NCBI GenBank assembly: GCA_003427395.1
Contig: BFEA01000013.1
Coordinates: forward strand, 465,326-529,325
Direction of reading: 5' to 3'
DNA length: 64,000 nt
Source: Chara braunii
Taxonomy: Eukaryota; Plantae; Charophyceae
Of the stretch, positions 7,443 to 56,387 are shown in pieces. The position numbers and the translations under genes were made by a program. How positions within the stretch are numbered: the stretch's first letter is position 1; every line of letters starts with the position of its first letter. The notes under the pieces are model-generated. The model was not told the DNA's origin. It saw nothing but the letters and a program-made list of their open reading frames with translations, and did not search any database.

Positions 7443-9599
7443 CTGCAATCAATCAGTCGACAAAAAAAGATATGTTAATTATGTTATTTGAAGTTATTAC
7501 CTACCAGCCGGGTCGCTCGGGTCCACGTTCTTTGCTCGGGTGGAAGGTCGCAGCAAAAAAAGAAAAAAACATTAATTTTTTTTAAAATTCAGTAAAAAAA
7601 AAAACTATGTTGTTCAAAAAATATAATTAGAAAAAGTTAATACAACCCATAAGCAACACACCGAGGCCAACGCTCACCGATCCCCCTGTCACACCATCGA
7701 CCATCCCAACAACTAGCTCTACATCAGGCCACACTCAGAGTAGTCACCTGGAGCACAGATTGGACATAGCTCTAAAAACCCAAAACGCACAGGATATTGT
7801 CAAGTGCTCGAGAACCTAACCAGGTACCCTATAAGAACTGGTTACCTCCAAGACTCACTGTGAAGAACTGGCTACCTCCACCAACGACCTCCCAGCCACA
7901 GCCACCAACCACACAAACTAACACTACGACACCCACAGACCACTAACCCAACACACAGAGCCCACACAACCACAAACCTCTCCCCTGACCACTCCTCCCA
8001 GTGCACCAACCCATCTCACAATATCTGCCAAACACATCCTCCCTCACTACCCCATCAGCATAGAACACCCGCTGGAAGCCAACACAAAGGAGATGGCTTG
8101 GTAGGCTCAATACTAAACGAGAGACGCTCGGTCAAGAACTGACTCCCACTAACCCCTGAGAGAGAAGAACACACCAGATTCCACAACAACGAACCTAGCG
8201 TTCCAACCACCCCACAGTTCCCCACTACAATCATCTCATTAAATCCCATACAGCAGCTTCCCGACGGGACAATCTCACCAACCTAACACCTCAATCGACC
8301 TTTGCTCAACCACCTCCAATCAAACCCCCCGATAACACACCTACACACAGTCCAATCTACCCCTTCCCAACACACAAACACAACCCTCACACCCCCTTGC
8401 CAGAGCCAAGCATCAAGAGGAAGCCAAGGAAAGAGAGCTCAACAACCTTGGAGGAACATCCCAAAAGAGAAGGGAAGCAGGCGCCCTACAGGCTACACAA
8501 GAGGGGACGACAGAGAGACAAAAGGTGGACTAACACCAGAAGATGTACAAAGCCAGGAGGTACAAAGAAACCGGAAGAGGAACGGGCCCGTTGAAGAAGA
8601 CGGACGTCTACAGGGTCAAAGTACAACTCACAATGAGGAGGAGTTTCTGCAACAGACATGACATTCCAACCCCAACATAAAAGAGAGAAATGTCTTAAGA
8701 TAGAAAGTAAGAGAAACAAAGACAACACTATGCCCAAACCCAGATCTGGAACAGGAAAATATTACATGCAATCTATTAGACCCTGAAAGCAGCTTGAAAC
8801 TAGGTCTGGAACTCAGACAAGGGGAGGTTAGACAGAACCTTCAGGGTATAGAGCTTAAGCAAAACAGCTTCAAAAGAGGGGTGATGGGCCCACAACCTAG
8901 TTTTCTTAGTTTTAAAGGAGAGATCAGACGGATCCCCATAGGGTCTTCGAGAGGTAACAAGGTAAAGGCAGAGCACCAAGAGACAAACAGCAACGAGAGC
9001 GGTACGCAGAAGGAAAGCGAGAGAGAAAGTAGTAAAAAGTTGGGACTACGGCCCAGTCGCTCTAGCTGACCACAGACGGATTTGACAGAAACTCGAGGGT
9101 TTCTGAAAGGAAATGGATACAGCTGACCTTCAGGATATCAGGGAGATAATAGGACACAAACTTGGGTGAAACTTGAGAGTACTCCGAGAGGATGATGTGA
9201 GGCTTAGATCAGAGCTAGGAGGGTTATTAAACAGGCGGAGCGTGGAAGGTAAGTTGGCTGATGCTGTCAGACACACCCGGGTAGAAATGTGAGGTCCCCG
9301 ACCTTTCTTTTCAGAAGTTTTAATACAAGTTGGTTTTTGTTATTAAAAAAAAAACAGGTACCCTAATCCTACCCCATACTGGGCATACCCTATACACCCA
9401 CTCTCTCAAACCCATGTCTAGACCTTTCCGACTACATCCTCACTTTCAGCCCCAAACACACGCTAAACCAGCCTCTCGCACAATAAGCTTTGAGCTATAA
9501 TAACTTCGATCACAACTCGCCCAACTGGGGCAAACAACAAGGAAGATCCATATAAGAGGGGACAGAAGGATTGCAGTCTAACAAACTTCATTTCCTTGC

Positions 9600-14845: not shown

Positions 14846-17033
14846 TTCTCTGATTCTTTTGAAAAATCAAGACAGACAGAGCCGGAAGTGTCGGCCATAG
14901 TTGGGACCTGCACTGTGCTCTGACAGCACGTGGGGCTGTTTAGGGGTCCGGGCTATCTGAAGTCTGCTAGAGGCAAGAGAAGTTCGTTCCTTGCTGAACC
15001 CTCCTCAGGAGGAGGGTGTCAGGATGTGTGGCGCTGCAACCATAGCTGCAGCTTCCTTCCTCAGAGATCATCTTTGTAAGGAGAGGTGGCGCTGCTACAG
15101 ACTTCCACCCGGGAAGTCTTCTGGCACTTCATCTTCATCAGATATTGTGGCGCTGGTCTTCTTCTTCATCCTTTGAGAGGCGCTTGGCCTCAGAGGCCTG
15201 TTTCAGCGTGGTGCTTCCCTGTGCAGACAGTATCAGGGTGGCCTAAGAGGCCTGTTTGAGGGTGGTGCTTCCCTCTGGAGGCAGTATCTGGGTGGCGCTG
15301 GTTGTTTCAGGGGCTCAGGGGTAGTATATAGGTTACTCAGGGTTGGGGAGTGAAGCGCTGCTCATCACCATGGTTAATAAACAGTGTGTATACTGTGTGT
15401 GGACTATCATTGCTTCATTGTTTCCTGGATGTGATCTACTCGGCTTTCCTTTGTGACTGGTTGTGAGGATTTTGTGGAGCGAATTGCACTCTCAGTGTTT
15501 TCAGTCATATCGCATGGTCAAGTCTTTCGCTGAGTTTATCTCTCCCTGTGCGGTGTGATACTCCCACCCTCTCCCCTTCCTTTTGTGTGTGTACGGGCAT
15601 ACGTGGAAGTCTATGTGAGCGAGTGTTGGTCTTCTGACAACAAACAACCAGGATCATAACACATCCATCCATCTTCTTTTTCTTCTTCTAGTTCTTCTTC
15701 ACCATTGGTTAGCAGCCTTCCTCCATCCCTCCATTTGCCCATCTCGCCATCCCTCCCCGCCTCCCTCCCTCCATCCATCCATCTTTTTCTTCTTCAGAGC
15801 AGCAGGCAACAAACATGCAGCAGACATCAGAGCAGCAGGCAACAAACATGCAAAGCCCCCAACCCAGTACATATCAGATGACAAACATTCCACCCAGTGA
15901 AACGGATTCCACCTTTCGCAGTAGCCAATGAAGATCGCAGGGCTCGATTCCTAGTCCTCACTTCACCTGTGTGCAGTATCTGGGTCGACCCCGAGAGTTG
16001 AACCCGTGACTTGTGTATTCGCAATAGTTGGTAGGCTGTCATAGGTCCGTAGGTCGTAGGGGCTCGATTTGAAGACCTGTTGTGTGTAGGCCTTAGCAAG
16101 ACCTAGGAGTCATAGCTGTAGCTCATAGATACTATAGGCCTGAAAGGTCAAGGTCGTAGCTGCTAATGTACCGAAAGGCCAAGTCTACGGACTTCCGGAA
16201 GGTTCGAAAGTGGTGTTTCGAAGCTTGCTCACGTTTAGACAAGGGCAAGTGGGCAAGTGGCGAGGCCAACTGCAGTACGTCGGCAGTGCGACTGCGGTGA
16301 GTTGGCAACGCGTCCCCATGCAGTCAGTGGTATCCGTCCCAGTCAGTCAGGGTCCAGTCAAGCAAGTATCGGGTGAGACTGTGTGCACCCAGGGCATGGG
16401 AAAGGAGCAGACCAATAAGCTACAGAAGTGGAAATCAAGAGGCAGCGACCAGCCATTCATTCATTCTTGTGTAATCCATGAGGAAGTGTTGCTTGAGCGT
16501 CTTGTGCGAGGTGGTCTGCAGATATGCCTGAAGTCGAAGTGGGCTGAAGGAGATAGCATAGCCATAGTTGTAGGTAGGGACAGCGGCTAGCGCCGCCATA
16601 GCTGTCGGTGAGTGCAGTGTGCGTGTGTGTGTATACAGAGTGTGTTGCATATGGGATATCCAGGATGATCTAGAGTTGAGGGTGTGTGAACGGTGAACTC
16701 GAGCATTGTGACGAACAAAGTTGTTGGGCGCTATCGCGCCATAGCTTATCTGAAGCGAGTTGTTGTTCGTGGTTCTATATCTCCGAGTTCTGAGTTGGGC
16801 GCATATCGCCAGTTTACTGTGTCACCTGTTTGCATGCATGTAAAGCAAGAAAGAAAGCAAGTCTGATTGTACTGGTATCGACGATGGTACCCGCTATCCC
16901 ATGCGCCATCGCCGTTGCAGCAGGAGAGAATGCGCGCAGTAGGGCGCCATAGTTGAAGAGCGCCGTTAAAGAAGGAAGTCCGCCATAGTTGTACTGCAGA
17001 CGAAGGTGTCGTGTACCTGCACAGAAGACAACT

Positions 17034-17087
<54 letters not shown>

Positions 17088-17760
17088 GAGCGCTACAAGA
17101 TTGGTTGTGTGGTGACTGTGGGCCAAAAGGAAGTGGCGGCCATAGTCGCAGAGCTCGAACATGGAGTAATAGAGAAGGAAGGAGGAGACATAGCCGAGGA
17201 AGAAGAAAGGGGCGAGATAGAAGAAAGGTGAAGAGAAGGGAAGTTGGCGAGGAAGAAAGTGCCGGCAGCCATAGCCGACTTGAGGGTTGACTTCGGTGTT
17301 GACCAATAATTGACCAGGTGTTGACCAGAGGGTTCATCGGAGCATTGACCAAGTTTTGGCCGTGTTGACCAAGTGTTGACCAAGGCGTTGACCGGAGCTA
17401 TTGACCACGATGTCGACCAAGGTGGAGTTGGTATAATCTCGCCAGGCCCTTAGCCTATCCCCTCGCCCTATGGATGTACACTCACCCTCTGGTACTTGCA
17501 GAGTCTGAGTCTATCCGTCGCTTCTTTCTGCATTTGAGTCTCTTCTGTCCAGGTGATAGGACTCCGTGTATGAAGGATAGGGCCTCGTTGACCAAACCCA
17601 CACTGGCTTAGTAGGGCTAAAGGTTGTGTCTGGCGACTCGACTGTCCCGGAGGACACGAACCCTCCCAAGGACCGGTACTGATCGGCGGGCTGCTCGGTG
17701 TTGTACGGTAGGCCCAAAATCTGAGTTGTGGGCTGCACAACGGCCCGTCTAAGTCTTGAG

Positions 17761-17858
17761 AGAACCTCCTGATCAAGTTGTCCTGTCTGCGACGTTAAAG
17801 AATTCCTGAGGTGTTACGGGGTATCTCCTTAAATGCCTCTTGATCAGCAATAGGTTCT
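17761..17858 (+). ncRNA. Conserved structured RNA motif in Ty3 leader (copy A)
   Basis: Outer stem AGAACCT-CTGATCAAG / CTTGATCAG-AGGTTCT. It encloses hairpin GTTGT-CCTGTCT-GCGAC, linker GTTAAAGAATTCC and a second hairpin with a GGGG loop. Homologous to 33903-34011. Confidence 0.6.
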
Positions 17859-18020
17859 GTAGTGACGGCTATAGTTTAAAGTCCAGGTTAAAGACCATAG
17901 TTGGTAGGGTTCTGTACGGACCCTGTCGTCCTTAGATTGAGTCGGTCTTAAGCCGAGTTAGTTAGGGGGAGAGTCTAAGTGGTGAGGAGTGAAACCGTTA
18001 CTTGGTTCTGCGTCTATCGT

Positions 18021-20447
18021 CATGGTTGACACACGTACCGAAACGAACACCTCCCCTTACACAGCAGAACAGGATGCAAAAGCCGTTGCCATTTTGAAAG
18101 AGAGAAGGAAGAAGAAGGAGGCCAAGAAGAAGGCCTTGCTGAAAGAACAGACGGCGAAGAAGAAGAAGGTTGAGGAAGAGATGGCGAAGGAACTGGAGAG
18201 GTTGACAAAGGAGGAAGAAGAAAAACTTAGAGCGGTAGAGGCAGAAGAAGATCCGTTGGAGAAGAAGATTACGGAACGGGTGGCCAATTTATCCTTGGGA
18301 GAAGAGGAGGCATTAATGTATGTAACCAGGGAAAAGCAGAAGGCGGCCATGAAAGAGTGGGATGCAGAGGAAGTCCCACTCAAGCGGCAGACTATAGAGA
18401 ATGAAAAGAGCATGGAGTTGAAGCTGCGGCTGATGAGGGAAAGGAAAAAGAGAGTGAAAGCAGTGAGCCAAGCGGCAAGGGAATTGGAAGAAGTAAAGAA
18501 ACAGAGAGAGCACATGGAGGTGCAGGCGGACCTGTTAGGGAACATGCAGGTCATGGCACATAGAGCGCCTAGCCCAGATCGGAAGAGCAATATCAGTTTG
18601 GTAGGAGTCAGGACTTAGCCTTGCGATTTATACGGCTGGGATTCAGAGACTTCGCACGTGAGTAGAGAACACAGGGCGTCATTGCACAGGGCGTCAGAGG
18701 TGAAGGCGCGCCTAGAGAACACAGGGCGTCATTGCACGGGCGCCATAGAGGGTGCCAAGCTGGCTGCACCCAAGGAAGAAGAAGCACGTCCTCGTAGGGA
18801 GCCTATTAAACTGAAATTCCCAGACTCCTATAGTGGAAAGAAGGAGGAGAACTTCGACAATTGGGAAGGCAATATTAAAACGTATGTGCACTTGCAGAAA
18901 GTCACCCCAGACGAACACGTCCTGATAGCTATCCACGCTCTTACAGAGAAAGCAGCAAGCTTCCCCCGTTCCCTGTGTCGCGCCGCCAATTGGACCGATG
19001 ACTTAGTTATGTATTCAACGTTTACCCCTCTCAACGATTTCCTTAAGTTATTGAGCGAACGGTTTGCAGACGTTACCCGTAGTGTGAAAGCCTCACATAA
19101 GTTGCAAACCATTCTCACCAATGGAAGAGTGTCAGGGCACTCGGAGGTGTGATGGACGAGTTAGTCGTCGTTCCCGACCATGGGGTCACTGAGACCCAAT
19201 TGGTCAACTTCTTCTACCGTGTCATGCCCGAACAGCTACGCGGGCATTTCTTTGAAAAAAGTCAGCAGCCTATCATGAACTATGATGCTTTGAGCAGGGA
19301 AGTGGTAGCGTTCGAAGCGCGGTCCATGTCAGTCTCCACCTATGAATCCCCCGCGGTCATGATCGCGGGGTCAATGTCGGCCCGCGGTCGGGATCCCGAC
19401 CGCCGAGGTCGGCCGCGGGCGAGGGCCACAGTCGGAAAACCTTGACATTTTTAATTCGTAGGATAATAGGCAAAAAAAACACAAAAAAATATAGGGTTGT
19501 AGGTTTTTTTGCCCTCTACACCCGTATATTCTTTGTTTTATTTTTTTACTTCATTTAGATTTTTTTTAAAATGAAAAACAGAAATCCCTCGAGCAAAAGT
19601 TCTTCACTTTATTCTTTTAGTAAGAAAAATAAAGGATTTTGTTTGTTTGTATATCTCAAATTTGGTAACGAATTTTGATATGACGCCAAGGCAAAAGTTG
19701 TTCAGTTTAGTTTTTGGCATAACATATATTTGTTTCAGAGTTTTCTGAATTTTTTTTTTTTTTTTTTTTTTCCTTTTTTCTTCACCGCGGACTGCGGTCA
19801 TGACCGCGGGCCCGAGGTCGTGCCCGAGGTGACCGCGGCCGTGGGGGATTCATAGGTCTCCACTTTCTGACACAAGGACCTGGATAAGGGCAAAAAGTGG
19901 AAAGTTGTACCATATCGGGTCAGGTCAAGGCAAAGGATCGCCTGATCCTTTCATTAGATGAAGGTGGTATGGATGAAGTCCCCTACGACCAGATAGAGTG
20001 GGGACTAGAAGAGGAGGAGGACAGTAGCGCTAGCCAGGGGAGGACTTGCACTGTTGTCGCGGCCGGAGAAAGGCCGCAAGGAGGAGGTAGAGGGCCAAGG
20101 GGGTCGGGCCTCTGGTGGTCGTTTCCAGGGCGATCAAGGGGTTGGAGGTAGGGGCAACCGCCAAGCGGGAGGCAGGGGTCAAGGTCCCTCGCAAAACCGT
20201 TCTGGAAATAGTTCATCGAATAGGGGGAATAGGTCACCCTATAGGAGAAGTGGTTGGCACCCAGGTCTGCCACAAGGCCGACCTTGGGAAGATTTGGGCC
20301 TGGACCAGCGCGTCTGGCAACAGCGTTTGGACCAGGGGTAGTGCATATATTGCGGTGACCCTGGTCACATCATCAAATATTGTCCAAAGTATAGAGATGC
20401 CCGATCGGCTGCCCAGGGGTCAAAAGGCAGCCGCCGACAGGGGTTAG
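18021..20447 (+). pseudogene. gag: Gag of element A (coiled coil, capsid-like region, CCHC zinc knuckle), interrupted by a MITE
   Basis: KLKFPDSYSGKKEENFDNWE retrotransposon-gag motif. Knuckle CIYCGDPGHIIKYC at ~20342-20383. Confidence 0.85.
19340..19855. mobile_element. hAT-type MITE inserted in gag of element A
   Basis: TIR CTATGAATCCCCC / GGGGGATTCATAG. Perfect 8-bp TSD GTCTCCAC at 19332-19339 and 19856-19863. Subterminal CCGCGG motifs. Confidence 0.92.
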
Positions 20448-29908: not shown

Positions 29909-29964
29909 AGATTGTCGATGGTTCAGCCTCCTGATGAGTCAGTGCAACTCCGACGAAACAATCT
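29909..29964 (+). ncRNA. Type III hammerhead ribozyme
   Basis: AGATT-GTC^ (cleavage after 29916); stem I GA(T)GG-TTCAG-CCTC; core CTGATGA; stem II GTC...GAC; GAAAC-AATCT closing a 7-bp stem III. Confidence 0.88.
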
Positions 29965-31026: not shown

Positions 31027-31836
31027 NNNNNNNNNNNNNNNNNNNNNNNNNNNNNNNNNNNNNNNNNNNNNNNNNNNNNNNNNNNNNNNNNNNNNNNNNN
31101 NNNNNNNNNNNNNNNNNNNNNNNNNNNNNNNNNNNNNNNNNNNNNNNNNNNNNNNNNNNNNNNNNNNNNNNNNNNNNNNNNNNNNNNNNNNNNNNNNNNN
31201 NNNNNNNNNNNNNNNNNNNNNNNNNNNNNNNNNNNNNNNNNNNNNNNNNNNNNNNNNNNNNNNNNNNNNNNNNNNNNNNNNNNNNNNNNNNNNNNNNNNN
31301 NNNNNNNNNNNNNNNNNNNNNNNNNNNNNNNNNNNNNNNNNNNNNNNNNNNNNNNNNNNNNNNNNNNNNNNNNNNNNNNNNNNNNNNNNNNNNNNNNNNN
31401 NNNNNNNNNNNNNNNNNNNNNNNNNNNNNNNNNNNNNNNNNNNNNNNNNNNNNNNNNNNNNNNNNNNNNNNNNNNNNNNNNNNNNNNNNNNNNNNNNNNN
31501 NNNNNNNNNNNNNNNNNNNNNNNNNNNNNNNNNNNNNNNNNNNNNNCTCTTGCCAATGCCAGAACGTGCTAGCCCCTGAGGAAGCTTCCGGGTAGTTTCC
31601 AGGTAGCTTCTGGCTAAAGACTGAGGGCCTATAGGCCCTTGTTTTCAGGCTTGTCAGGCTGAACCGACCCAGGGCCTGTAGGCCCTCATTTTCAGGCTGT
31701 CAGTCTGACACGACACAGGGCCTGTAAACCCTTGTTTTCAGGCTTTCAAGCTGAAATCGACATAGCGTCCGAAGAGCCCTTACTTTCCTTGTTTGGTCGG
31801 GCCTTGCAGGCCCGTGTGGATGCGCCGTATGCCACA
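30631..31836 (-). repeat. 3' LTR of element D (partly N-gap)
   Basis: On the minus strand it begins TGTGGCATAC immediately after the polypurine tract AAGGAGGGGGGGG. Confidence 0.75.
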
Positions 31837-32160: not shown

Positions 32161-33221
32161 TGTGAGGATTGAGCCCTCAAGTAGGGGCCTTGCCATGATG
32201 TACATGTTCTGGGCTAAGGCCCCAACAAGCCTAGTGCCCGCCCTAAGTGAAGGCGGGCCAGCAAGTCAACAAGAGCCCTCTGTGCCAACATTTCACGAAG
32301 TGGGGTCTATACAGTTGCAGCACGCCAGTTGGTTGGAGTGCACCGAGTCTCGGATTTCAGCAAATGCTGAAATGCCCAGGGCCTCTGAGTTAGTTAGGCC
32401 CTGGGCACTCGAACGTGAGGCCGACAATGCATGCTGGGTAGAGAGGCCGAAAATGCAAAAGGGAAATTGGCCCACTGTCTGAATCTGGCCGCAGGCCTTG
32501 ATGAAGGAGGCGCAACTGCATTGCCCCGGGGCCCAACTGTATCGAGTTGCCTTCAGCCTCTGGGCCCCGGTCACAGGCTGAAGGGAGGCCGCCCACACGC
32601 TGCACTGGCATATAGGCAAGCAGGGCGAGGCAGCGGGGACCTTGGCCATTGCGGGCAATGCCGGCACGCTGCGCAAATGCAAGCTGCTGGCTGCTGCGCT
32701 GCGCTAAGAGGTAGTGCAAGGCAGGCATGCGCTAGACGGTAGGGCACTGCCTGTGCACTGGGCGCTTGGCGGCCATAGCCGGGCTGCAGAGGCTGCAGAG
32801 GGGTGAAGGGCGAAGGTGGTACTTCGGAGGTGAAGGACGCTGTGTGGGTAACAAGGGAGAGTGTGGGGAAGAGGACACGTACCTGGTGATGGTGGAGGTC
32901 TGCATTGGTGTTGACATCATCACTCGCTGGTAGTCAAGTTCGTAGTCAAGTTCTCTGGTTGCTGTTCATTGCTGTAGTTGTAGGATAAGCTGTAGAGTAC
33001 ATAGGGCGCCTGGCGCCATTCACAAGAGAGAGCTACATTTGGGTTATGCTGTTGGTGTTGCCCTGTTGGGCATGGACATTGACTCACGATTCTTCTGTAT
33101 CATTCTCAATGGGATGGTTACTCGGTTCCATGTGCTATCTGCTTTAGCTTTGAATACTTGGACTTCAGTGTGATCTTGCATTCTGGATTTCTGTGCTTCG
33201 TCCATACTCATATTCCTTGCA
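32161..33221 (+). repeat. 5' LTR of element B
   Basis: TG...CA ends, followed by the PBS. Homologous to the LTRs at 60247-60952 and 61468-62160. Confidence 0.85.
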
Positions 33222-33224
33222 ATT

Positions 33225-33236
33225 TGGTATCGGAGC
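33225..33236 (+). promoter_or_regulatory. Primer binding site (initiator tRNA-Met)
   Basis: TGGTATCGGAGC, one mismatch from the canonical TGGTATCAGAGC, 3 nt after the LTR end. Confidence 0.9.
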
Positions 33237-33902
33237 TGGTTTGATCGCCACTTACCTTCGGCATCCTGGCGTAATACAGATATGGTGCGTTGATGATGCT
33301 TCTTCGCAGTTGGTACTTGTGACGTCAGGCCATTGATAGGTGCACGCCCTGGGTAGAGAGGAGTGCACCGGAAGGATATTACGGCATTGTTTGCCGTGGG
33401 ATACAGCGGAATGTTTGATTGATGATGACAGCATGCTGATGTGACATTGGACTAAGGTGGCACTGCATTGCGTTGTGGGTGGCACCGAGGTCATGACCAG
33501 TCATCAAATGCAACATCAGCTCAATTGGTGAGAAATCTGTGGTTGGGGGCAGCTATCTCCAGGTATGTTGTTCCCTTACCTTATCTAAGCTCTCAATCTC
33601 TTCTTACCGTGAGGAAGTGAGTCCAACTTGAGAGTCCTCTCTTTTGGTGAGGTGTCGTGAGCGCGCTACCTTGAGAGACGTCAATCTTCCCGGAAGCATA
33701 CTGGAAGGAGAAAGGGGGGTGCCTCTGAAGGGCCCTGGTCGAAGCACTTGGGTCACGGTCACCATGCCAACCCACAGGGAGTAGTGCACGCATGCGATGG
33801 CTGCTGTCCTGTTTGGCACTTGCTGCGCTAATAGAAGTTCCTCCGGGTGTGCCAGCCCATGACAGACACTACCAGACCGTCTATAAATATTTCTGGTTGG
33901 GA

Positions 33903-34011
33903 GTTCATTGTGAATCTGGCTGTGATCGTCGTCCTGACTGCGACGTTAAATAATCCCTGAAGAGATGGGGGCGCTCTATGAATTCCTCCTAATCAGCCAG
34001 ATCACATGGAC
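33903..34011 (+). ncRNA. Conserved structured RNA motif in Ty3 leader (copy B)
   Basis: Outer stem GTTCAT-TGTGA-TCTGGCTG / CAGCCAGA-TCACA-TGGAC. It encloses hairpin CGTCGT-CCTGACT-GCGACG, linker TTAAATAATCCC and a second hairpin with GGGG. Confidence 0.6.
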
Positions 34012-34499: not shown

Positions 34500-36361
34500 A
34501 TGAGTGGATCAGATCCTGTTGATGATAGAGCTGAACATAGGAGACTTACACGTTCGGAAGCATCAAGGGTTCCACACATGTTCAGGACCTTGGACGAGGG
34601 AGAAGAAAGACGGCTTCGTGCCGAACGTAGAGCCCGTGCTCTAGCAGCAGGACTACAGGAAGCAAACAGAGTAGCAAGAGAGCGGGCAACAGCAGCCAGA
34701 GCAGCAGCAATGGCTAACGGTACCAGCTCTGCTGCGTCATCGTCTGCGTTCTCGTCAGGGACTAGTGGGACTCAGTTGGGAATGCCACTGAGTTCCACGA
34801 GTTCCTCGGGCACTTCCGGTTCAACAGGGTCTAGACAATCTTCTAGTCAAATGGCAGGATCGCAGTTCAGCCCGTTGACCCCACATGAGAGGGAGCTCAG
34901 AGAAATCCAGCAGGTCGAGAGGCTCCGCCAGCAATTAGGAGGATCTGAAGAAAGCAACCGATAGAGAAAAAGAGATAAAAAGGAGAGCAGCCAGACTTGA
35001 TACGTTAGAGGCTGACAAGGCTGCGTTAGAGGGATTGGACGAATCGAGTTTGTCTGATACCCTGAAAGTGTTGAGGGACAACATGTTGTCACTGCATGCG
35101 CACGTAGACAGCAGGATGGACCTCATGCAAAGCACTTTGAACCAGATCTTGGATGCATTGACAAAGCCAGGATTCCGACCACCAGCACAATCGTCGTTGC
35201 CGTTAACGGCGATGTCAGGCCCCTTTGCCGTACAAGCTGGCACACAGCCAAGTGGCACATCTGCAGCAGCAGCAGACTGTTGCATCTTCTTCTTCGGGTC
35301 CAGTGGTGATTGTTGCATCACCACAACAACCTGTTCAGCCAATTGGACAGCCGCAAGGTCAATGGTATCCCAAGACCCCAATGAAACCGCCTCTGGCCTT
35401 CTCAGGCGAGAGAAAGGACGAGGAACTCAACACTTGGTTGAGGACAGTCCCGGTTTGGGTGAAGGCCAAAAGGACCTTGCCTGAGGACGAAGTGGTAACT
35501 ACGGCGTCTGACCTTGAGGGTAAGGCAGCCAAGTGGTTAGATGGTGTAGTTGTGAAGGCCAGGTACGGGAGACGCATGGCGGATTGGGCTAAGTCTTTGA
35601 CTTTAGACCAATTCATGGAGATGGTAGAAGCTCGGTGGCATAACCCACAGGAGGCTCAAAGGGCCACTGATGCCATTAACAAACTGGACCAAAGCAAGTT
35701 CAGGTCAGTTAGGGAGCTTACGACTACCATCGAGAGCCTGATCCTCGTCCCAGGTATCAACTACAGCGACCAGCTCCTGTTGCTTACGTTTGTCAGATGT
35801 CTCCCAGAGAACATGAGGAACTTACTAGCCAGTGAGGCACGCACCGAGTACCACTCGTTTGAGACATTGTCTAGGAAAGCCTTAGACTTAGAGGCCACNC
35901 TAGGCAATGCTCAACCCACCTCAGGGAATGACTCAAAGAAGAAGAAGAGTCCTCAGGAGTGGAAGAAGAAGGGGGCGAAGTTGATGATGGTTGCGTCTGA
36001 TGGGACTCAAACTGAGATTGATGAGCTCTCTAACCTGATGGACTACTCAGAGTATGACGGCGAGGAGGTAGCTGAGGGTAGCACCCTCACCGCGGTAGTT
36101 AAGGCTAAGACGGCAGGCCGAGGGAAGGGCCAACCTAGGGGTCAAGGAAAGGCCGCCTCCAATCAGACCAAACAATCTGAGTGGGTAAAGGCAGGTCTTG
36201 ATCAAGACGTGTGGCGTGACCGCCGAATGCGTGGCGCTTGTATCAACTGCGGAGAGTACGGACACACGCAGTGGAAGTGTCAGAACGCGAAGGTTGCGCA
36301 AAAGGTTGCGCCAAAAGTGGGGGCAACTTATTCCCACGCTTCTAGCTCGGGAAACGCGTAG
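34500..36361 (+). pseudogene. gag: Gag of element B (frameshifted)
   Basis: PPLAFSGERKDEELNTWL...AAKWL capsid-like region. CINCGEYGHTQWKC knuckle. Spread over ORFs 34500, 35035 and 35225. Confidence 0.88.
36349..36355 (+). promoter_or_regulatory. -1 ribosomal frameshift slippery heptamer G_GGA_AAC
   Basis: Correctly phased in the gag frame one codon before the gag TAG. The pol ORF (36367) is in the -1 frame and open from the heptamer. Confidence 0.7.
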
Positions 36362-39987: not shown

Positions 39988-40872
39988 CGCTCGTAGTCCG
40001 CAGATACTGAGAAGTCAGGTAGCGAGAGGGTGAAGAAGAGATGGTGGACTTATAAGAGGAAGAAGAACTCTCTCTCTCTCTCTCTCGCAATCCGGTACTA
40101 ACCTGTGAAGTTGGCGCCTTGATGCAGGTATCACGAAGATGAAGCTGGAGCTATGGCGCCACAGGTACGTCTCTCTGGCCTCCGCCAGCCATCTCTCTCT
40201 CCAACACTACTCTACTCCTACCAGCGCCCAGTGCTGAAGACTACCACTACCGCTACTAGCGCCCAGCGCTGAAGACTACTGCTAGCTCTAAAGCTACTCC
40301 TGCAGCGCTCCTCCAGAGTGCTGCTGCCGAATCCTGCCTTCTGCCTCCTGAACTGCACGTTAAGTGCCTGGCCAGTCCTTATGAACTACCTCCTTCCTGT
40401 AGGGCGGGCCAGTCTTATATAGTGCTGGCCCGTCCAGGAGGCTGCTCTTGCCAATGCCCAAACGGGCTAGACCCTGAGGAAGCTTCCGGGAGGCCGCTCT
40501 TGCCAATGCCAGAACGTGCTAGCCCCTGAGGAAGCTTCCGGGTAGTTTCCAGGTAGCTTTTGGCTAAAGACTGAAGGCCTATAGGCCCTTGTTTTCAGGC
40601 TTGTCAGGCTGAACCAACCCACGGCCTGTAGGCCCTCGTTTTCAGGCTGTTAGTCTGACACGACACAGGGCCGGTAGGCCCTTGTTTTCAGACTGTCAGG
40701 CTGAAACGACACAGGGCCTGTAGGCCCTTATTCTCAGGCTGTCAGGCTGAACGACACAGGGCCTGTAGGCCCTTGTTCTCAGGCTTTCAAGCTGAAAACG
40801 ACACAGGGCCTGTAGAGCCCTTACTTGTTTGGTCGGGCCTTGCAGGCCCGTGTGGATGCGCAGTATGCCACA
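39920..40872 (-). repeat. 5' LTR of element D (left boundary uncertain), with internal ~40-bp tandem units
   Basis: Near-identical to 31547-31836. Repeated ACACAGGGCCTGTAGGCCCTTGTTTTCAGGCT units. Confidence 0.7.
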
Positions 40873-46454: not shown

Positions 46455-47177
46455 TCAACAGGTCCCCGTCGACGTTCGTGCTTTGTTCTTTCCCGCCCGC
46501 ACCGTTTCCCACCATACCCAAGTCCACTCTACACCGAACGCCGTTTTCATCCACCTCCCACAGCAGGTCTCGTCGAACTCGATCCCTGCGTCCAGGAGGA
46601 TGTTGTGGAGAGTGCATACCGCGACGAATTGCTGCGGCAAGGTCTCCAAGTTCGTTTTGTGGGTGCGCAGGAATAGACGCCACATGCACTTCAACCGCCC
46701 GAATGCCCTCTCCACACACCGCCGTGCCACCTTCTGCTGCGTGTCGAAACGTTCCCCGTCAAGACGTTGCTCGATTTCTCCATACGGCTGGACGATCCAT
46801 GGACAGGCAACGGGGTACCCGTTGTCCCCGAGAAGGTAACCTCGTGTGACGACACCGTATAGCAAATTCTCCGGAGGGGCATCGAAAAGCTCGCCACTTT
46901 CTGCGCGCCTCCACAAATCGGAGTTCTGCAGGACACGGACGTCGTGCACACTTCCCGGGTATCCGACATGGACGTCCAGGACTCGCAGATCCAAATCGAC
47001 TACCACCTGCTCCGTGTATCCGACGTGGACGTCCAGGACACGCAGATCCAAATTGACTACCACCTGCGCTTGAACGGAGAACTTCTGTTTGCGGTCGTAG
47101 TAGTTAACTGGCGGCGCGCTGGCGGGCTTGTAAATGTACACGTGCGTGCAGTCAATTGCGTCGAAGCAGTTAGGGAA
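46455..47177 (-). pseudogene. Harbinger transposase DDE domain, inverted relative to its N-terminus
   Basis: FPNCFDAIDCTHV, YYDRKQKFS, GSVHD, LLGDNGYP, VERAFGRLK, CTLHN. Confidence 0.93.
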
Positions 47178-47856
47178 ACAGTCGTTCAATGTCGGTCGTC
47201 GCATTGCAAAGGTTCGTCTTATTTTGTCGTTGTTGTTTCTTCTCTTCGATTAAGAAAACTTGCATCAAAAGTTGTCAATTAACAATTGTTGTCTTCAATT
47301 AGCGAATGATGTATTTCAGTTTCATGATCCACATGTTCATTTATTCACACTTTCCTTTTATGCCAAAAAAAAAATAAAAAAAATTCAATGCAATGCACTG
47401 TTCATGGAATGCAGAGATGACAACATCATCGAATGCAGAGACGACAACATTCAAACATGTATGAAGGCGACGACAAGCCTGGCAAGGTCTTCTGAAAATG
47501 ATACACCAAAAGAAGTCGCTAAACTGCAGCAATTAAAATCGTTCACACACACCACCCGTTCGTCTGGACGCGAACTTCGAATGGGTGATTGTCCTCCAAA
47601 ATAAAAAGGCCCCCCGGCTGCCACACCAATGCACGTCGTCATCATCAATGTCTTGGGAAGGGATAAACAGGCACACGAAGCGAACCTTTCATACCAAAAA
47701 CAAAAACAAGCATTGGCCCGCCGTAATGACCTTACGCAGAAACTGACCGTCTACTGCAATGCCCGCCAAACCAAAATTACGGAAAATATAGTGCCACCTA
47801 CAACCAATGACGAGCACCATGCAGGGCCTTTCGCAGCTTCTCCCACATCGCTAACT

Positions 47857-53154: not shown

Positions 53155-55818
53155 CTAAAACGTCTCCGCCATAATCAAAACTATCAAGGATGTCCATCCG
53201 GTGAAGGGATGAGCTCCTTTCCCCTTGCCACTCCTCATGTGGTCGTAGTTCTCCCAAAGGTACCCACTTTCCTGATATCGTTGGACGACATTCCTGATGA
53301 CATTCTCTCTGAGCTCCGCGTACAGCCTCTGCGCCTCCTGCTTCGAATGCCCTTCCACTGATGCATAGTGTTTCAGCGCCGACAACGCTAAGTAGTTGAC
53401 GTTGATCCACACCGGTCCTCTCCAGTACGGCGCGTCATGTTCCGTGTTGCGCTTGTTGTAAAGAGAGCTTGTGGTGGCAAGCGATCGAAGCCCAAACTTT
53501 GTCCAGAGCAATGTCTCATCCCTCAGGAGCTGCAGCTGCTGCCTGAGATTGTCAGAGTTCGGTGGAAGGAGTTTGATCAGGAGTGGGAAGAGAGAGACAT
53601 AGCCGAAGTGTGGGACCAGAGCGGGACCTGGCGCCTTCAGAACAACGCGTTCAAACGAACGGTGAAAATACCCGGTTCTCGCATCAACGTACTCTCTTGG
53701 CTGAAGATAAACCTTGTCAGAGTGGTTGCCATAGTCATAGTACCTGCCTGACTCCAGATCCAAGTGCAGCGAGTTCAGCAAATTGATGTCAGACAACCAT
53801 GCTGCAGTTGCTTCGTAGTGTTCGTGGCGTTCGCCGACCATTTTCGCAATAACCGCCAAGGAATCTGCTGCCAGTGCCATCCAACAGCGCAGATCGAGGT
53901 GGCGCTCCTCATTGCCTGGATGTGAAGCGCGCGGGTAATCGTCCAAGCCGGACATCAGGGTCTTTGGGTTGAGCTCGCTGTTGGTGTTTGCATCTCTGCC
54001 GTGCCAAAAATAGCTTCCTGGCAATTGCCCTATCTGGCTGGTATTGAACCAGTGGAACCAGGACTGGAGGCGAGGGAAACTCCTCTTCAGGAATGTGCGC
54101 ACCGCCTCTCTCTCCCCTTCTTCAGCAGCAAGAGTGTCGGAAGAAGCCAGTTGCTTCGCAAGCTCCTGGATGGGAAGAAAGAGGGTTGGTGGATTGGCAT
54201 TGGAAGTGTGCTGGAGAACGAATTCCGCAGGCACTTTCATCCGTGCCTCTTCCCCAAGAATCTGCTCTCGTGGGATCCATCCATCGACATTCATCAGGTC
54301 TAACCAACTAGCCATAGCGTCCATGCTAATATTGCGATCCCACTTGCCAATCAACAACTGGTGAAATCCCTCGTCCCAAAGGAACCCGCGAGGGAACATG
54401 GGACGGCTTGGCACTGCTGTGTACAAGGATGCAGGCCAGTAGAGGAGGTGATCCTGCGTGCCACCGCCATGTTCTTGACCGGGCGCTGCGATCTTCGATT
54501 GCCCATAGAAGAAGCCCATCCCCCCAAGCAGGTTGCTGAGGGCAGCCTTGGCCACCTCTGCTTCAGCATCCTTCACACCCTTCCCGTGAAGCTCGAACGT
54601 GTCGTCGAATCTTTTGTCGAAGGCAGCCTCCTCGTCTGCGAGCTTGGCACTCAATTGAGCCCCGCTCAGTCCATCCACGCGCCCAGCGGTAGATCGCTCG
54701 TCTCCGACAACATTGGAGATAAATATGATATCCAGCTTGAGAGGAAACTCGGCTGTAATCTGATACACAACAAGATTTGATCTCTTTGAAACAGAGTTTG
54801 GCAGGTTCACTTTGCCTGACAACTTGGAATTCTCCACGAGAGTTCCCCACACAACCTCTGTCAAATTGTGAACGTGAAGAGCCTTCAGGCCAACGTAACT
54901 CTCATCTGCTGCTCCCTTCTTTCCTCGGACATGAAGCTGCCACGTGCCCACTTCTCCCCATTTCCCAACAGCAAGCAGCCCTTTCCCCGCGGATTTGGCA
55001 GGACTGGTTGAACCGCGCTCACCCGCAGATATGTCAAAGGATTTGCCGGACTCATCCGTGAAGTAAAACAGCAAAGAGACTGTCTTTTTCTTCGTCACCA
55101 TATCCTCGTCCCCTGATGCCGTAGTGGTAGGCGTGCCATTTTCGGTGGCGACGATTCTCACAGCCCAGTCGCCTCCATAACCAGAACCATGACCATGATG
55201 TTTAAGGAAATAAGTGGCGAGATGTAAGTTCCCATCAATGAGCTGCTGCCGACCAAATTTGGAACCGTCGTGACGAAGCCAGCCATACTTCTGCAGCCCA
55301 TCACCATCTTGACACGTGTGCCGCAGATGATAGCGCCCTTCCTTTCTCTGCACCCACATAAGTCCACCCAACAAGGATTCAGGCACCCTTGCTCGGATGC
55401 CCAAATAAAGATGAGGACGGTATGTACCCCAGAAAAGCCGCTCGCGGTGCACTCCTTGGAACAGCGGCAACGTCGAAACTGGGGGAGAAGGATGGCGGCG
55501 CACAGCTCGTGGTCCTCCTCCCTTCAGCGTTTCCACCATTTCCCACCATGCTCGGAAATTGCCGATACGAACAACGCCGGTCATGACGAAAAGAGCGGCG
55601 ATGAACGCCCACATCAGAGCCGTGCCTAGCCAGCTGGGAGGCGCGGAGGCGCCGGCGCGACCCGCCCGATTAGCCGCGCAGCGCTTACCCTTCCGAAGTC
55701 CCGCCATAGCCGGAGGCTGATTGCGCAAGGACGCGCGATAATCGCCATCCCTGACCTCGCCCGAGTATGGCGGCTCTCCGCCTTCCGCCCAAGAGCCGGC
55801 ACGACGTTGGCGCACCAT
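53155..55818 (-). CDS. GCS1: Mannosyl-oligosaccharide glucosidase (ER alpha-glucosidase I, GH63), ~887 aa, single exon
   Basis: Uninterrupted ORF from the ATG at 55818 (MVRQRR). Type II TM helix. LFWGTYRPHLYLG, VPSRPMFPRGFLWDEGFH, SGLDDYPRA, YWRGPVWIN, WENYD, FTGWTSL. An alternative ATG lies ~110 nt downstream. Confidence 0.97.
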   Translation of the reverse strand: MVRQRRAGSWAEGGEPPYSGEVRDGDYRASLRNQPPAMAGLRKGKRCAANRAGRAGASAPPSWLGTALMWAFIAALFVMTGVVRIGNFRAWWEMVETLKGGGPRAVRRHPSPPVSTLPLFQGVHRERLFWGTYRPHLYLGIRARVPESLLGGLMWVQRKEGRYHLRHTCQDGDGLQKYGWLRHDGSKFGRQQLIDGNLHLATYFLKHHGHGSGYGGDWAVRIVATENGTPTTTASGDEDMVTKKKTVSLLFYFTDESGKSFDISAGERGSTSPAKSAGKGLLAVGKWGEVGTWQLHVRGKKGAADESYVGLKALHVHNLTEVVWGTLVENSKLSGKVNLPNSVSKRSNLVVYQITAEFPLKLDIIFISNVVGDERSTAGRVDGLSGAQLSAKLADEEAAFDKRFDDTFELHGKGVKDAEAEVAKAALSNLLGGMGFFYGQSKIAAPGQEHGGGTQDHLLYWPASLYTAVPSRPMFPRGFLWDEGFHQLLIGKWDRNISMDAMASWLDLMNVDGWIPREQILGEEARMKVPAEFVLQHTSNANPPTLFLPIQELAKQLASSDTLAAEEGEREAVRTFLKRSFPRLQSWFHWFNTSQIGQLPGSYFWHGRDANTNSELNPKTLMSGLDDYPRASHPGNEERHLDLRCWMALAADSLAVIAKMVGERHEHYEATAAWLSDINLLNSLHLDLESGRYYDYGNHSDKVYLQPREYVDARTGYFHRSFERVVLKAPGPALVPHFGYVSLFPLLIKLLPPNSDNLRQQLQLLRDETLLWTKFGLRSLATTSSLYNKRNTEHDAPYWRGPVWINVNYLALSALKHYASVEGHSKQEAQRLYAELRENVIRNVVQRYQESGYLWENYDHMRSGKGKGAHPFTGWTSLIVLIMAETF

Positions 55819-56387
55819 CGCGGGGTGAGCACCGAAGGATCTACGCTCCGCAAACGTCCAGTGCAGAAACGTCACGCCACGTGATGCTTCTGTCCAGGTG
55901 TACTTCTACTCTGCCTAGCGTTCTCTCCTCCTGCCACAGCATCAATCAACCGGAAGACTCTGCTAACCTTTCCTTCGCCTTCAGCTCCCCAAGGCTAGCC
56001 GAACCTACAGCTGCAGCGTCTGCCCTCACAACGGAAACTTCCACTATGTCACAATAATGCAAAGACTGGCTGTGACTGCCACGCGGCAGTCTCGGGTATA
56101 AGGTAAATTTGCACTATACCTCTCAAAGATGCATAGCTTTCCGTCACAACCCTGCAAAGCCTTACCCTGTCCTGTCCCCCAGACACTAGTTCAACTTTGC
56201 GAAAACACCCCAGTTTCATCTGGGCATGATATCTGTCCATGATGCTCCCACAGGCACCAGTCAAACTTTTCAATATACCCCACATGGACGGCAGTTGGGA
56301 ACCTGGACCGAATTTTGGGTACAACCCTACCGTAGCATTCTTCTTTGGCGATGACCCTGAAGCCGCTGGACACCAGCAGCGACCCTC

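Follow-up and report, generated by a model that had tools for sequence, protein, structure and literature searches.

A predicted three-way junction RNA in the leaders of two divergent Ty3/gypsy lineages of Chara braunii

LTR retrotransposons make up most of many plant genomes, and to our knowledge the cis-acting RNA signals of such elements in the plant lineage are almost uncharacterised. A 64 kb stretch of Chara braunii DNA (the window, meaning the whole stretch that was analysed) raises the question of what such a signal might look like: the original prediction from its letters had recognised, in the leaders of two divergent Ty3 elements (here A and B), two copies of what appeared to be a single selected, structured cis-acting RNA. 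Both copies are indeed present, at positions 17761-17858 and 33903-34011, and the 13-mer CUGCGACGUUAAA has exactly two occurrences in the 64 kb window. What kind of RNA is this motif, and what could it do for the elements that carry it?

Two divergent elements and the distribution of their leader motif

Both elements are Ty3/gypsy by their Pfam domains (RVT_1, RNase H-like domains and integrase in A; Ty3_capsid, aspartyl protease and RT-RNase H in B), and both are decayed with many frame breaks. They are as divergent as had been thought, since their capsid domains are only 22% identical at the residue level and their RT/RNase H regions 53% (62.5% at the DNA level over 1139 nt). Their leaders likewise turned out to be unalignable outside the motif: sensitive blastn aligned nothing but the RT region, microsatellites and the motif itself, which with 75% identity over 79 nt is better conserved at the DNA level than RT. 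The gag open reading frame of element B at 35225-36361 has 66 protein matches, all labelled Chara braunii and ranging from 49% to 93% identity, and a CCHC knuckle is present in its Gag protein.

The position of the motif within these elements could be mapped from the LTR to gag. The 5' LTR of element B spans about 32161-33221 on the forward strand, with its end placed by comparison to another Chara locus (L013) whose LTR pair is 96.6% identical. Three nucleotides past this end, at 33225-33236 (+), lies a primer binding site (PBS) of the tRNA-iMet type, TGGTATCGGAGC, which matches the plant site for this tRNA at all but one position. The PBS of element A at 16873-16884 (+) is decayed but can be aligned to the intact sites of the related elements at loci L015 and L019. 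Seven further copies of the motif have a tRNA-iMet-type PBS 605-1134 nt upstream; no tRNA genes were found in the window or in the fetched loci. Downstream of the motif, gag of element A begins with a first open reading frame piece at 18022-18618 (+), 164 nt past the motif, and the N-terminal gag frame of element B lies at 34500-34964 (+), about 490 nt past the motif, with protein conservation from residue 1 in other B-like copies. The motif therefore sits in a leader of 1.1-1.3 kb and not in the LTR, which explains why there is one copy per element.

Using an HMM and then a covariance model on the window and on 12 Chara loci (about 281 kb and 87 kb), all fetched from assembly GCA_003427395.1, we collected 13 full copies of the motif from 11 genome stretches; besides the copies of A and B, eleven copies lie elsewhere in the Chara braunii assembly. 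All 13 lie on the sense strand of a Ty3 element, between PBS and gag and once per element, as would be expected of a packaging or dimerisation signal in the leader. They fall into two lineages, an A-like one (A, L015 and L019) and a B-like one comprising the other ten copies. The copy at L016 is rearranged, with its 3' half in place at 9094-9198 (+) and its 5' half inverted at 8371-8447 (-), about 700 nt upstream. Judged by gag, L013 is the locus most closely related to B. It has no motif, and the internal sequence that should follow its 5' LTR has been lost or exchanged for other DNA. Metagenome contigs were scanned with two exact patterns, the first of them too narrow for most B-like copies, and neither gave a match. 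The 12 pattern matches in viral contigs were all dismissed as chance because the rest of the motif is absent there.

Several further observations concern the surroundings of these elements. At L018 (8814-8924), a B-like leader with its motif occurs at a locus that had been found via an A-like capsid fragment (P0068, 73% identical to A), a combination that suggests mosaic or recombinant elements. Two blocks at 31547-31836 and 40497-40872 that are 88-92% alike, consist of short internal repeats and lie about 8.95 kb apart flank element B; the comparison with L013 puts the beginning of the LTRs of B near 32161 and shows these blocks to be distinct from them. The leader of element A contains about ten imperfect tandem copies of a GTTGACCAAG-like unit of 10-12 nt (17290-17420), preceded by a (GA)n microsatellite at 17040-17086. 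Elsewhere in the window, an uninterrupted open reading frame of 906 amino acids at 53155-55875 (-) with N- and C-terminal domains of glycosyl hydrolase family 63 (E 1e-205) probably represents an intronless host gene or retrocopy for mannosyl-oligosaccharide glucosidase, and the frame at 46455-47204 (-) with a DDE_Tnp_4 / Plant_tran domain points to the remnant of a PIF/Harbinger-type DNA transposon.

A predicted three-way junction on the sense RNA

The RNAalifold consensus is a three-way junction, in keeping with the multi-way junction that had been proposed from copies A and B. The model is that of a domain of about 90 nt on the + strand leader RNA in which a closing stem (P1) would enclose two hairpins (P2 and P3), connected by the joining segments J2/3 and J3/1. 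Copy A comprises the whole junction with an extended closing stem at 17761-17858 (+) and scores 91.3 bits in cmsearch over 17752-17862. In its MFE fold, the P1 5' strand (17761-17776, +) pairs with 17840-17858 and is composed of an outer part, AGAACCU (17761-17767), and an inner part, CUGAUCAA (17769-17776). The P2 hairpin follows at 17777-17793 (+; GUUGU/GCGAC) with a loop of 7 nt, CCUGUCU, at 17782-17788, and then J2/3 at 17794-17806 (+; GUUAAAGAAUUCC), which is unpaired and conserved by per-column analysis. The P3 hairpin, as defined by RNAalifold and covariation, lies at 17807-17831 (+; UGAGGUG/CUCCUUA) and exposes a GGGG-bearing loop (17814-17824), before J3/1 AAUGCCUC and the P1 3' strand, UUGAUCAG ... 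AGGUUCU, complete the domain at 17832-17858 (+).

The leader RNA domain of copy B (33903-34011, +; 105 bits) has the same architecture. Its P1 5' strand at 33903-33922 (+) is made up of GUUCAU, GUGA and UCUGGCUG and pairs with 33994-34011. It is followed by the P2 hairpin at 33927-33945 (+; CGUCGU/GCGACG) with loop CCUGACU, the similarly conserved J2/3 at 33946-33957 (+; UUAAAUAAUCCC), the P3 hairpin at 33958-33980 (+; UGAAGAG/CUCUAUG) with loop AUGGGGGCG, and J3/1 with the P1 3' strand at 33981-34011 (+).

How far does comparison across copies bear this fold out? The + strands of A and B are both more stable than dinucleotide shuffles (z = -3.0 and -2.7, respectively), and across the 13 copies 93.1% of the cells of the alignment pair, which drops to 27-58% when the 3' partners are slid by 1-3 columns. 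Changes on both sides are seen at 4 pairs, a number equalled by 1 of 500 shuffles, and the covariation score of 0.133 compares to 0.059 for shuffles and was reached by none of 500. These figures have to be read with care, since the 13 copies are related and in decay, the double changes that arose independently number only four or five, and the counting alignment was fitted to the model. Two G.U pairs, the loop-closing pair of P2 and the second pair of P3, are present in every one of the 13 copies; on the opposite strand they would be A.C mismatches, which argues that the functional strand is the sense RNA.

The closing stem was predicted to change in sequence between copies and nevertheless to pair, and this is what the larger set of copies revealed. 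P1 has a conserved core, (G/U)GCUG/CAGC(C/A), in which one pair changes from G-C to U-A (A and L015) and another from C-G to U-A (L023), and an outer part that is lineage-specific yet complementary: AGAACCU/AGGUUCU in A, GAACCAA/UUGGUUC in L019, GUUCAU/AUGGAC in B and GUCUGA/UCAGAC in the L014 type. Between B and the L014 type, four consecutive outer pairs differ and all are compensated in an alignment read by eye, and in L015 one base has been lost from each strand relative to A, so that the stem is one base pair shorter. Since plain duplex energies between the flanks gave too noisy a matrix, we used a hairpin test against shuffled 3' flanks instead, in which the cognate flanks of B and L014 reached z = -4.85 and z = -3.45, respectively, and most, though not all, cognate flank combinations beat the non-cognate ones.

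The interior of the domain varies far less than the outer stem. P2 (5-6 bp, loop CCUGNNN) is near-invariant apart from single-copy damage, and its stem displays no covariation in the 13 copies, so that its conservation could reflect sequence rather than structure. The segment J2/3, UUAAAUAAUUCC, is conserved, A/U-rich and unpaired; its GUUAAA, which the original prediction had called invariant, is found in 12 of 13 copies and reads AUUUAA in L015, making it near-invariant. J3/1 is a conserved junction with CCUC and the palindrome UGAUCA.

The second hairpin stood the comparison less simply. P3, a 7 bp hairpin with a GGGG loop, is supported by covariation in the form UGAGGNN/NNCCUUA, with a top pair that is C-G in 8 copies and G-C in 5 and with a G-C to A-U double change at another pair in copy B alone. 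Yet P3 is the single-sequence MFE pairing of none of the copies, and enforcing it costs 0.3-6.7 kcal/mol; the MFE structures, which vary between copies, usually pair GAGG with CCUC and GGGG with CCUU. Comparative data nevertheless appear to favour P3 over this alternative, because GAAG in copy B disrupts the alternative pairing whereas in P3 it is matched by a compensating change, and GGCUC, found in two copies, is likewise incompatible with the alternative. According to the model, GGGG probably pairs either with CCUC, which would create an H-type pseudoknot on P3, or with the loop of P2. The two pairings, the GGGG-UCCUG pseudoknot of the original prediction and GGGG-CCUC, look the same in comparative data because all positions involved are invariant. 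A GGGG/CCUC pseudoknot could repay the energetic cost of P3, and the domain may switch between nested and pseudoknotted forms. Beyond the domain, no conserved long-range partner for J2/3, J3/1 or the P2 5' strand and loop was found within -2.5 to +8 kb of the copies, and complements of the GGGG loop occur in this range only at scattered, non-conserved places.

The conservation of the motif depends on the distance over which it is viewed. Between lineages, the core is 0.73 identical (range 0.67-0.79) and the adjoining 11-13 columns on each side 0.17-0.21, and the motif is the only non-coding stretch conserved between the two lineages. Within lineages, core identity amounts to no more than 0.82-0.87, from which it follows that much of the difference between lineages is probably private decay of individual copies. 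At this shorter distance, the motif does not exceed the upstream leader in conservation, since identities there are 0.80-0.89 for the blocks at 33523-33782 in B-like copies and reach 0.96 for 17661-17700 in A-like ones. The predicted selected cis-acting RNA therefore holds in one respect and not in another: we find what appears to be a constrained, structured RNA on the + strand of the leader that alone is conserved between lineages, but no excess of conservation over the flanking leader within them. The leader blocks at 33523-33782 and 17641-17720 are conserved within their lineage (0.80-0.96) and unalignable between lineages, and they may be further, lineage-specific cis elements.

This pattern also bears on whether the motif needs an RNA-level function at all. 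It could instead be a patch of recombination between co-packaged elements or an element acting at the DNA level, such as an internal promoter, with its base pairing being incidental. The limited within-lineage conservation fits such a view, as does the mosaicism suggested by the A-like capsid and B-like leader of L018, and a TATAAATA box lies 14-20 nt upstream of the outer stem in B-like copies. However, this TATA box is absent from the A-like lineage, and the conserved block coincides exactly with a domain whose bounding flanks are complementary without being homologous. A DNA element would not be expected to show compensatory changes or G.U pairs that are invariant and strand-specific, and the core identity between lineages (0.73) approaches the one within lineages, which reflects the decay of individual copies. 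On balance, we consider it quite unlikely that the motif has no function as RNA.

The sequence around the TATAAATA box merits a description of its own. Just upstream of the closing stem, B-like copies share CCAGACCGUCUAUAAAUAUUUCUGG (33871-33897 in B, and L014, L017, L018, L020 and L022), which contains a perfect TATAAATA at 33882-33889 in the loop of a CCAGA/UCUGG hairpin, and of which the A-like copies share only CCGUCUA. This stretch might serve as an internal promoter or form an additional hairpin in the RNA.

Comparison with catalytic and exonuclease-resistant RNA families

A comparison of the window with Rfam 15 gave no match to any family at gathering score, and the best sub-threshold matches of permissive scans (221 nt, E<=10) were RF02467 with 16 bits for copy A and the SAM-II riboswitch family RF00521 with 19 bits (E 0.026) for copy B. 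The likeness to SAM-II comes from the hairpin of copy B followed by GUUAAA.AA...CU.AAGAG, but the match needs P3 substitutions that are specific to B, copy A has no such match, and RF00521 is an alpha-proteobacterial family according to its Rfam description; with 19 bits compared to a gathering score of 36, we regard it as chance.

A self-cleaving ribozyme, either pistol-like or of a new class, might trim the leader. The pistol ribozyme has a P1 + AAA module that resembles a hairpin followed by a GUUAAAUA-like linker, a similarity that had already been pointed out and that is accompanied by the two invariant G.U pairs of the domain. This resemblance did not survive closer comparison: no ribozyme family of Rfam 15 matches either copy at E<=10, the pistol model RF02679 matches neither around the copies at this threshold nor, at gathering score, anywhere in the window, and the likeness of the GUUAAAUA-like linker was not reproduced by the covariance model. 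Pistol requires a pseudoknot between its P1 loop and a downstream segment as well as a P2/P3 arrangement with a G-U cleavage site, whereas the Chara domain is a three-way junction that has neither. None of the aligned copies contains NNNCAGG, the complement of the P2 loop CCUGNNN, within the domain, and the only pairing open to this loop is a weak, G.U-rich one with GGGG. A hammerhead-like sequence elsewhere in the window indicates that ribozymes occur in this genome, but self-cleavage by the leader domain itself seems to us highly improbable.

The hammerhead-like sequence is of type III and lies at 29909-29964 (+), about 2.2 kb upstream of the LTR of B and not part of the motif. It has a complete CUGAUGA...CGAAAC...GUC core and reaches 36 bits with RF00008 (E 1.3e-06 when 181 nt are searched); as this falls short of the gathering score of 48.5, a default scan overlooks it. 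For the motif itself, hammerhead and HDV-like topologies were rejected by eye, given that CUGAUCA/CUGUGAUC are near-misses to the CUGAUGA box and that there is neither a GAAA box nor an Rfam match.

A resemblance also exists to coremin, the Xrn1-resistant motif of plant and fungal RNA viruses that the original prediction had also named. Like coremin, the Chara domain has a hairpin, an A-rich spacer of about 10-13 nt and a second hairpin, and the two have the 9-mer GACGUUAAA in common. In functional coremin, the first hairpin has a stem of 3-5 bp with a pyrimidine-purine closing pair and the second one comprises 4 bp or more (PMC6546385, PMC10520033), and functional variants tolerate loops of 6-8 nt (PMC10520033). 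In the Chara copies, the loop-closing U.G pair (13/13), the P2 stem of 5-6 bp and the P3 stem of 7 bp agree with these features. One could therefore imagine that P2, the GUUAAA spacer and P3 stall XRN4/Xrn1 so that a stable, 5'-truncated RNA starting at P2 would accumulate, and the shared 9-mer and layout, the closing pair with its 5' pyrimidine and 3' purine the size of the second hairpin and the tolerance for loops of 6-8 nt (PMC10520033) all point in this direction.

The finer sequence requirements of coremin argue against it. The loop of its first hairpin is YGAD or YGNNAD, with G as the second nucleotide, A as the penultimate one and a last nucleotide other than C (PMC6546385, PMC10520033), and loops such as CCGAAA and CCGAA fail to stall Xrn1 (PMC10520033). 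By contrast, the Chara loop reads C-C-U-G-N-N-N in 12 of 13 copies, so that the second nucleotide is C rather than G and the penultimate one is C or U rather than A. In the coremin spacer, (G)UUAAACUAC, A16-A20 are essential and the changes C18A, U19A and U19C abolish stalling (PMC6546385), but the Chara equivalents of C18 and U19 are U/G and A, since GUUAAA (12/13 copies) is followed by (U/G)AAU(U/C)CC, and the spacer is 2-3 nt longer at the sensitive 3' end (PMC6546385). Furthermore, the match of a 9-mer can be chance, the Chara hairpins are part of a three-way junction whose conserved P1 has no role in coremin, and coremin belongs to viral 3' UTRs whereas the Chara domain lies in a retrotransposon 5' leader. 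The proposed resemblance thus extends to the layout and the 9-mer but not to the loop and the spacer. Judged by these features, the domain is not a member of the coremin/xrRNA-C family, and we think it distinctly unlikely that it resists exonucleases as coremin does.

A looser relationship would be that the domain is a retrotransposon relative of coremin xrRNAs that blocks exonucleases and ribosomes around GACGUUAAA with a different solution for its loop. We consider this a long shot. If true, it would be the first such element outside RNA viruses and would point to either a common origin or a common structural principle of viral and retroelement motifs.

Candidate roles on the genomic RNA

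Since the motif is the only non-coding stretch common to both lineages, it is probably a signal on the genomic RNA of these elements. Among the functions that such a signal could have, we tentatively favour packaging and/or dimerisation, with the leader domain as a candidate Psi-like signal of the full-length genomic RNA, a reading that we regard as possible and short of an even chance. It is favoured because the domain lies between PBS and gag in one sense copy per element, displays invariant GGGG and CCUG loops, and contains GAUC/UGAUCA palindromes, and because the Gag of B has a CCHC knuckle. A precedent comes from the related plant pararetroviruses, in which the coat protein binds a purine-rich packaging signal exposed at the apex of a large stem-loop in the leader (PMC5902531). 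Under this hypothesis, the domain would act in cis on the full-length genomic RNA, with the junction holding out its G-rich and UG-containing loops for putative binding by the CCHC zinc knuckle of Gag, and with the palindromes (GAUC/UGAUCA) that both strands of P1 carry at its inner end being able to pair either within one RNA or between two.

Known packaging domains such as the core encapsidation signal of HIV-1, Psi of MoMLV and the leader-top structures of CaMV/RTBV resemble the Chara domain in several ways: they belong to reverse-transcribing elements, in whose genomic RNA they occupy the untranslated leader, and combine multi-helix junctions with G- or purine-rich loops, nearby short palindromes and a CCHC knuckle in Gag. 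They are not similar to the Chara domain in sequence. The Chara palindromes lie in junction or stem strands, whereas the classical dimerisation sites of retroviruses lie in a hairpin loop, and the Chara PBS is located upstream of the structure, unlike in caulimoviruses. As the upstream leader is as conserved as the motif within each lineage, other parts of the leader could also carry the packaging function.

The main rival to a packaging/dimerisation signal is translation control, for which the domain could be an IRES-like platform, part of a shunt structure or a roadblock to scanning that helps ribosomes to reach gag. Such help would make sense for a leader of 1.1-1.3 kb that has 27 upstream AUGs between PBS and gag in B and 8 in A, though these counts are inflated because the copies have decayed, and no AUG lies between the motif and the gag AUG in A. 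Pararetroviruses use leader stem-loops for ribosome shunting (PMC5902531), and coremin-type two-hairpin motifs can block scanning ribosomes in vitro, which provides a precedent for a roadblock (PMC10520033). The spacing speaks against a role of this kind: the distance from motif to gag is about 60-165 nt in A-like but about 480-500 nt in B-like copies, so that the spacing to the gag AUG differs about four-fold between the lineages, and in B this interval holds 9 AUGs. There is also no conserved short uORF that ends before the stem, given that the AUG of the uORF in B is absent from L014. Taken together, we judge control of translation to be unlikely, if less so than the other alternatives considered here.

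A role in RNA processing or transport, with the domain regulating a splice donor in the leader or exporting unspliced RNA from the nucleus, would be another possibility for a signal at this place. Retroviral major splice donors lie in the leader beside the packaging domain. Directly 3' of the closing stem, most B-like copies have GUAAGG, which is similar to a 5' splice site and which we found at 12585-12592 in L014 and at the same place in L016, L017, L018, L020, L021, L022 and L024. However, B itself (AGGAAGG) and the A-like copies have no good GUAAG there, and the sole gene model across the region is plainly artificial, with P0024 spanning the motif as an "intron" that we rejected as an artefact. 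We hold a function in processing or transport to be improbable, on a par with exonuclease resistance.

What would the domain be good for beyond the elements described here? Already as a marker, it would be useful for annotating this group of elements in Chara. Should the resemblance to coremin turn out to be functional, it would link an exonuclease-resistance motif of viruses to endogenous retroelements. Above all, a compact and well-delimited domain that is common to lineages with capsids at 22% identity could be an entry point to understanding how the genomic RNA of Ty3/gypsy elements is committed to either packaging or translation in streptophytes.
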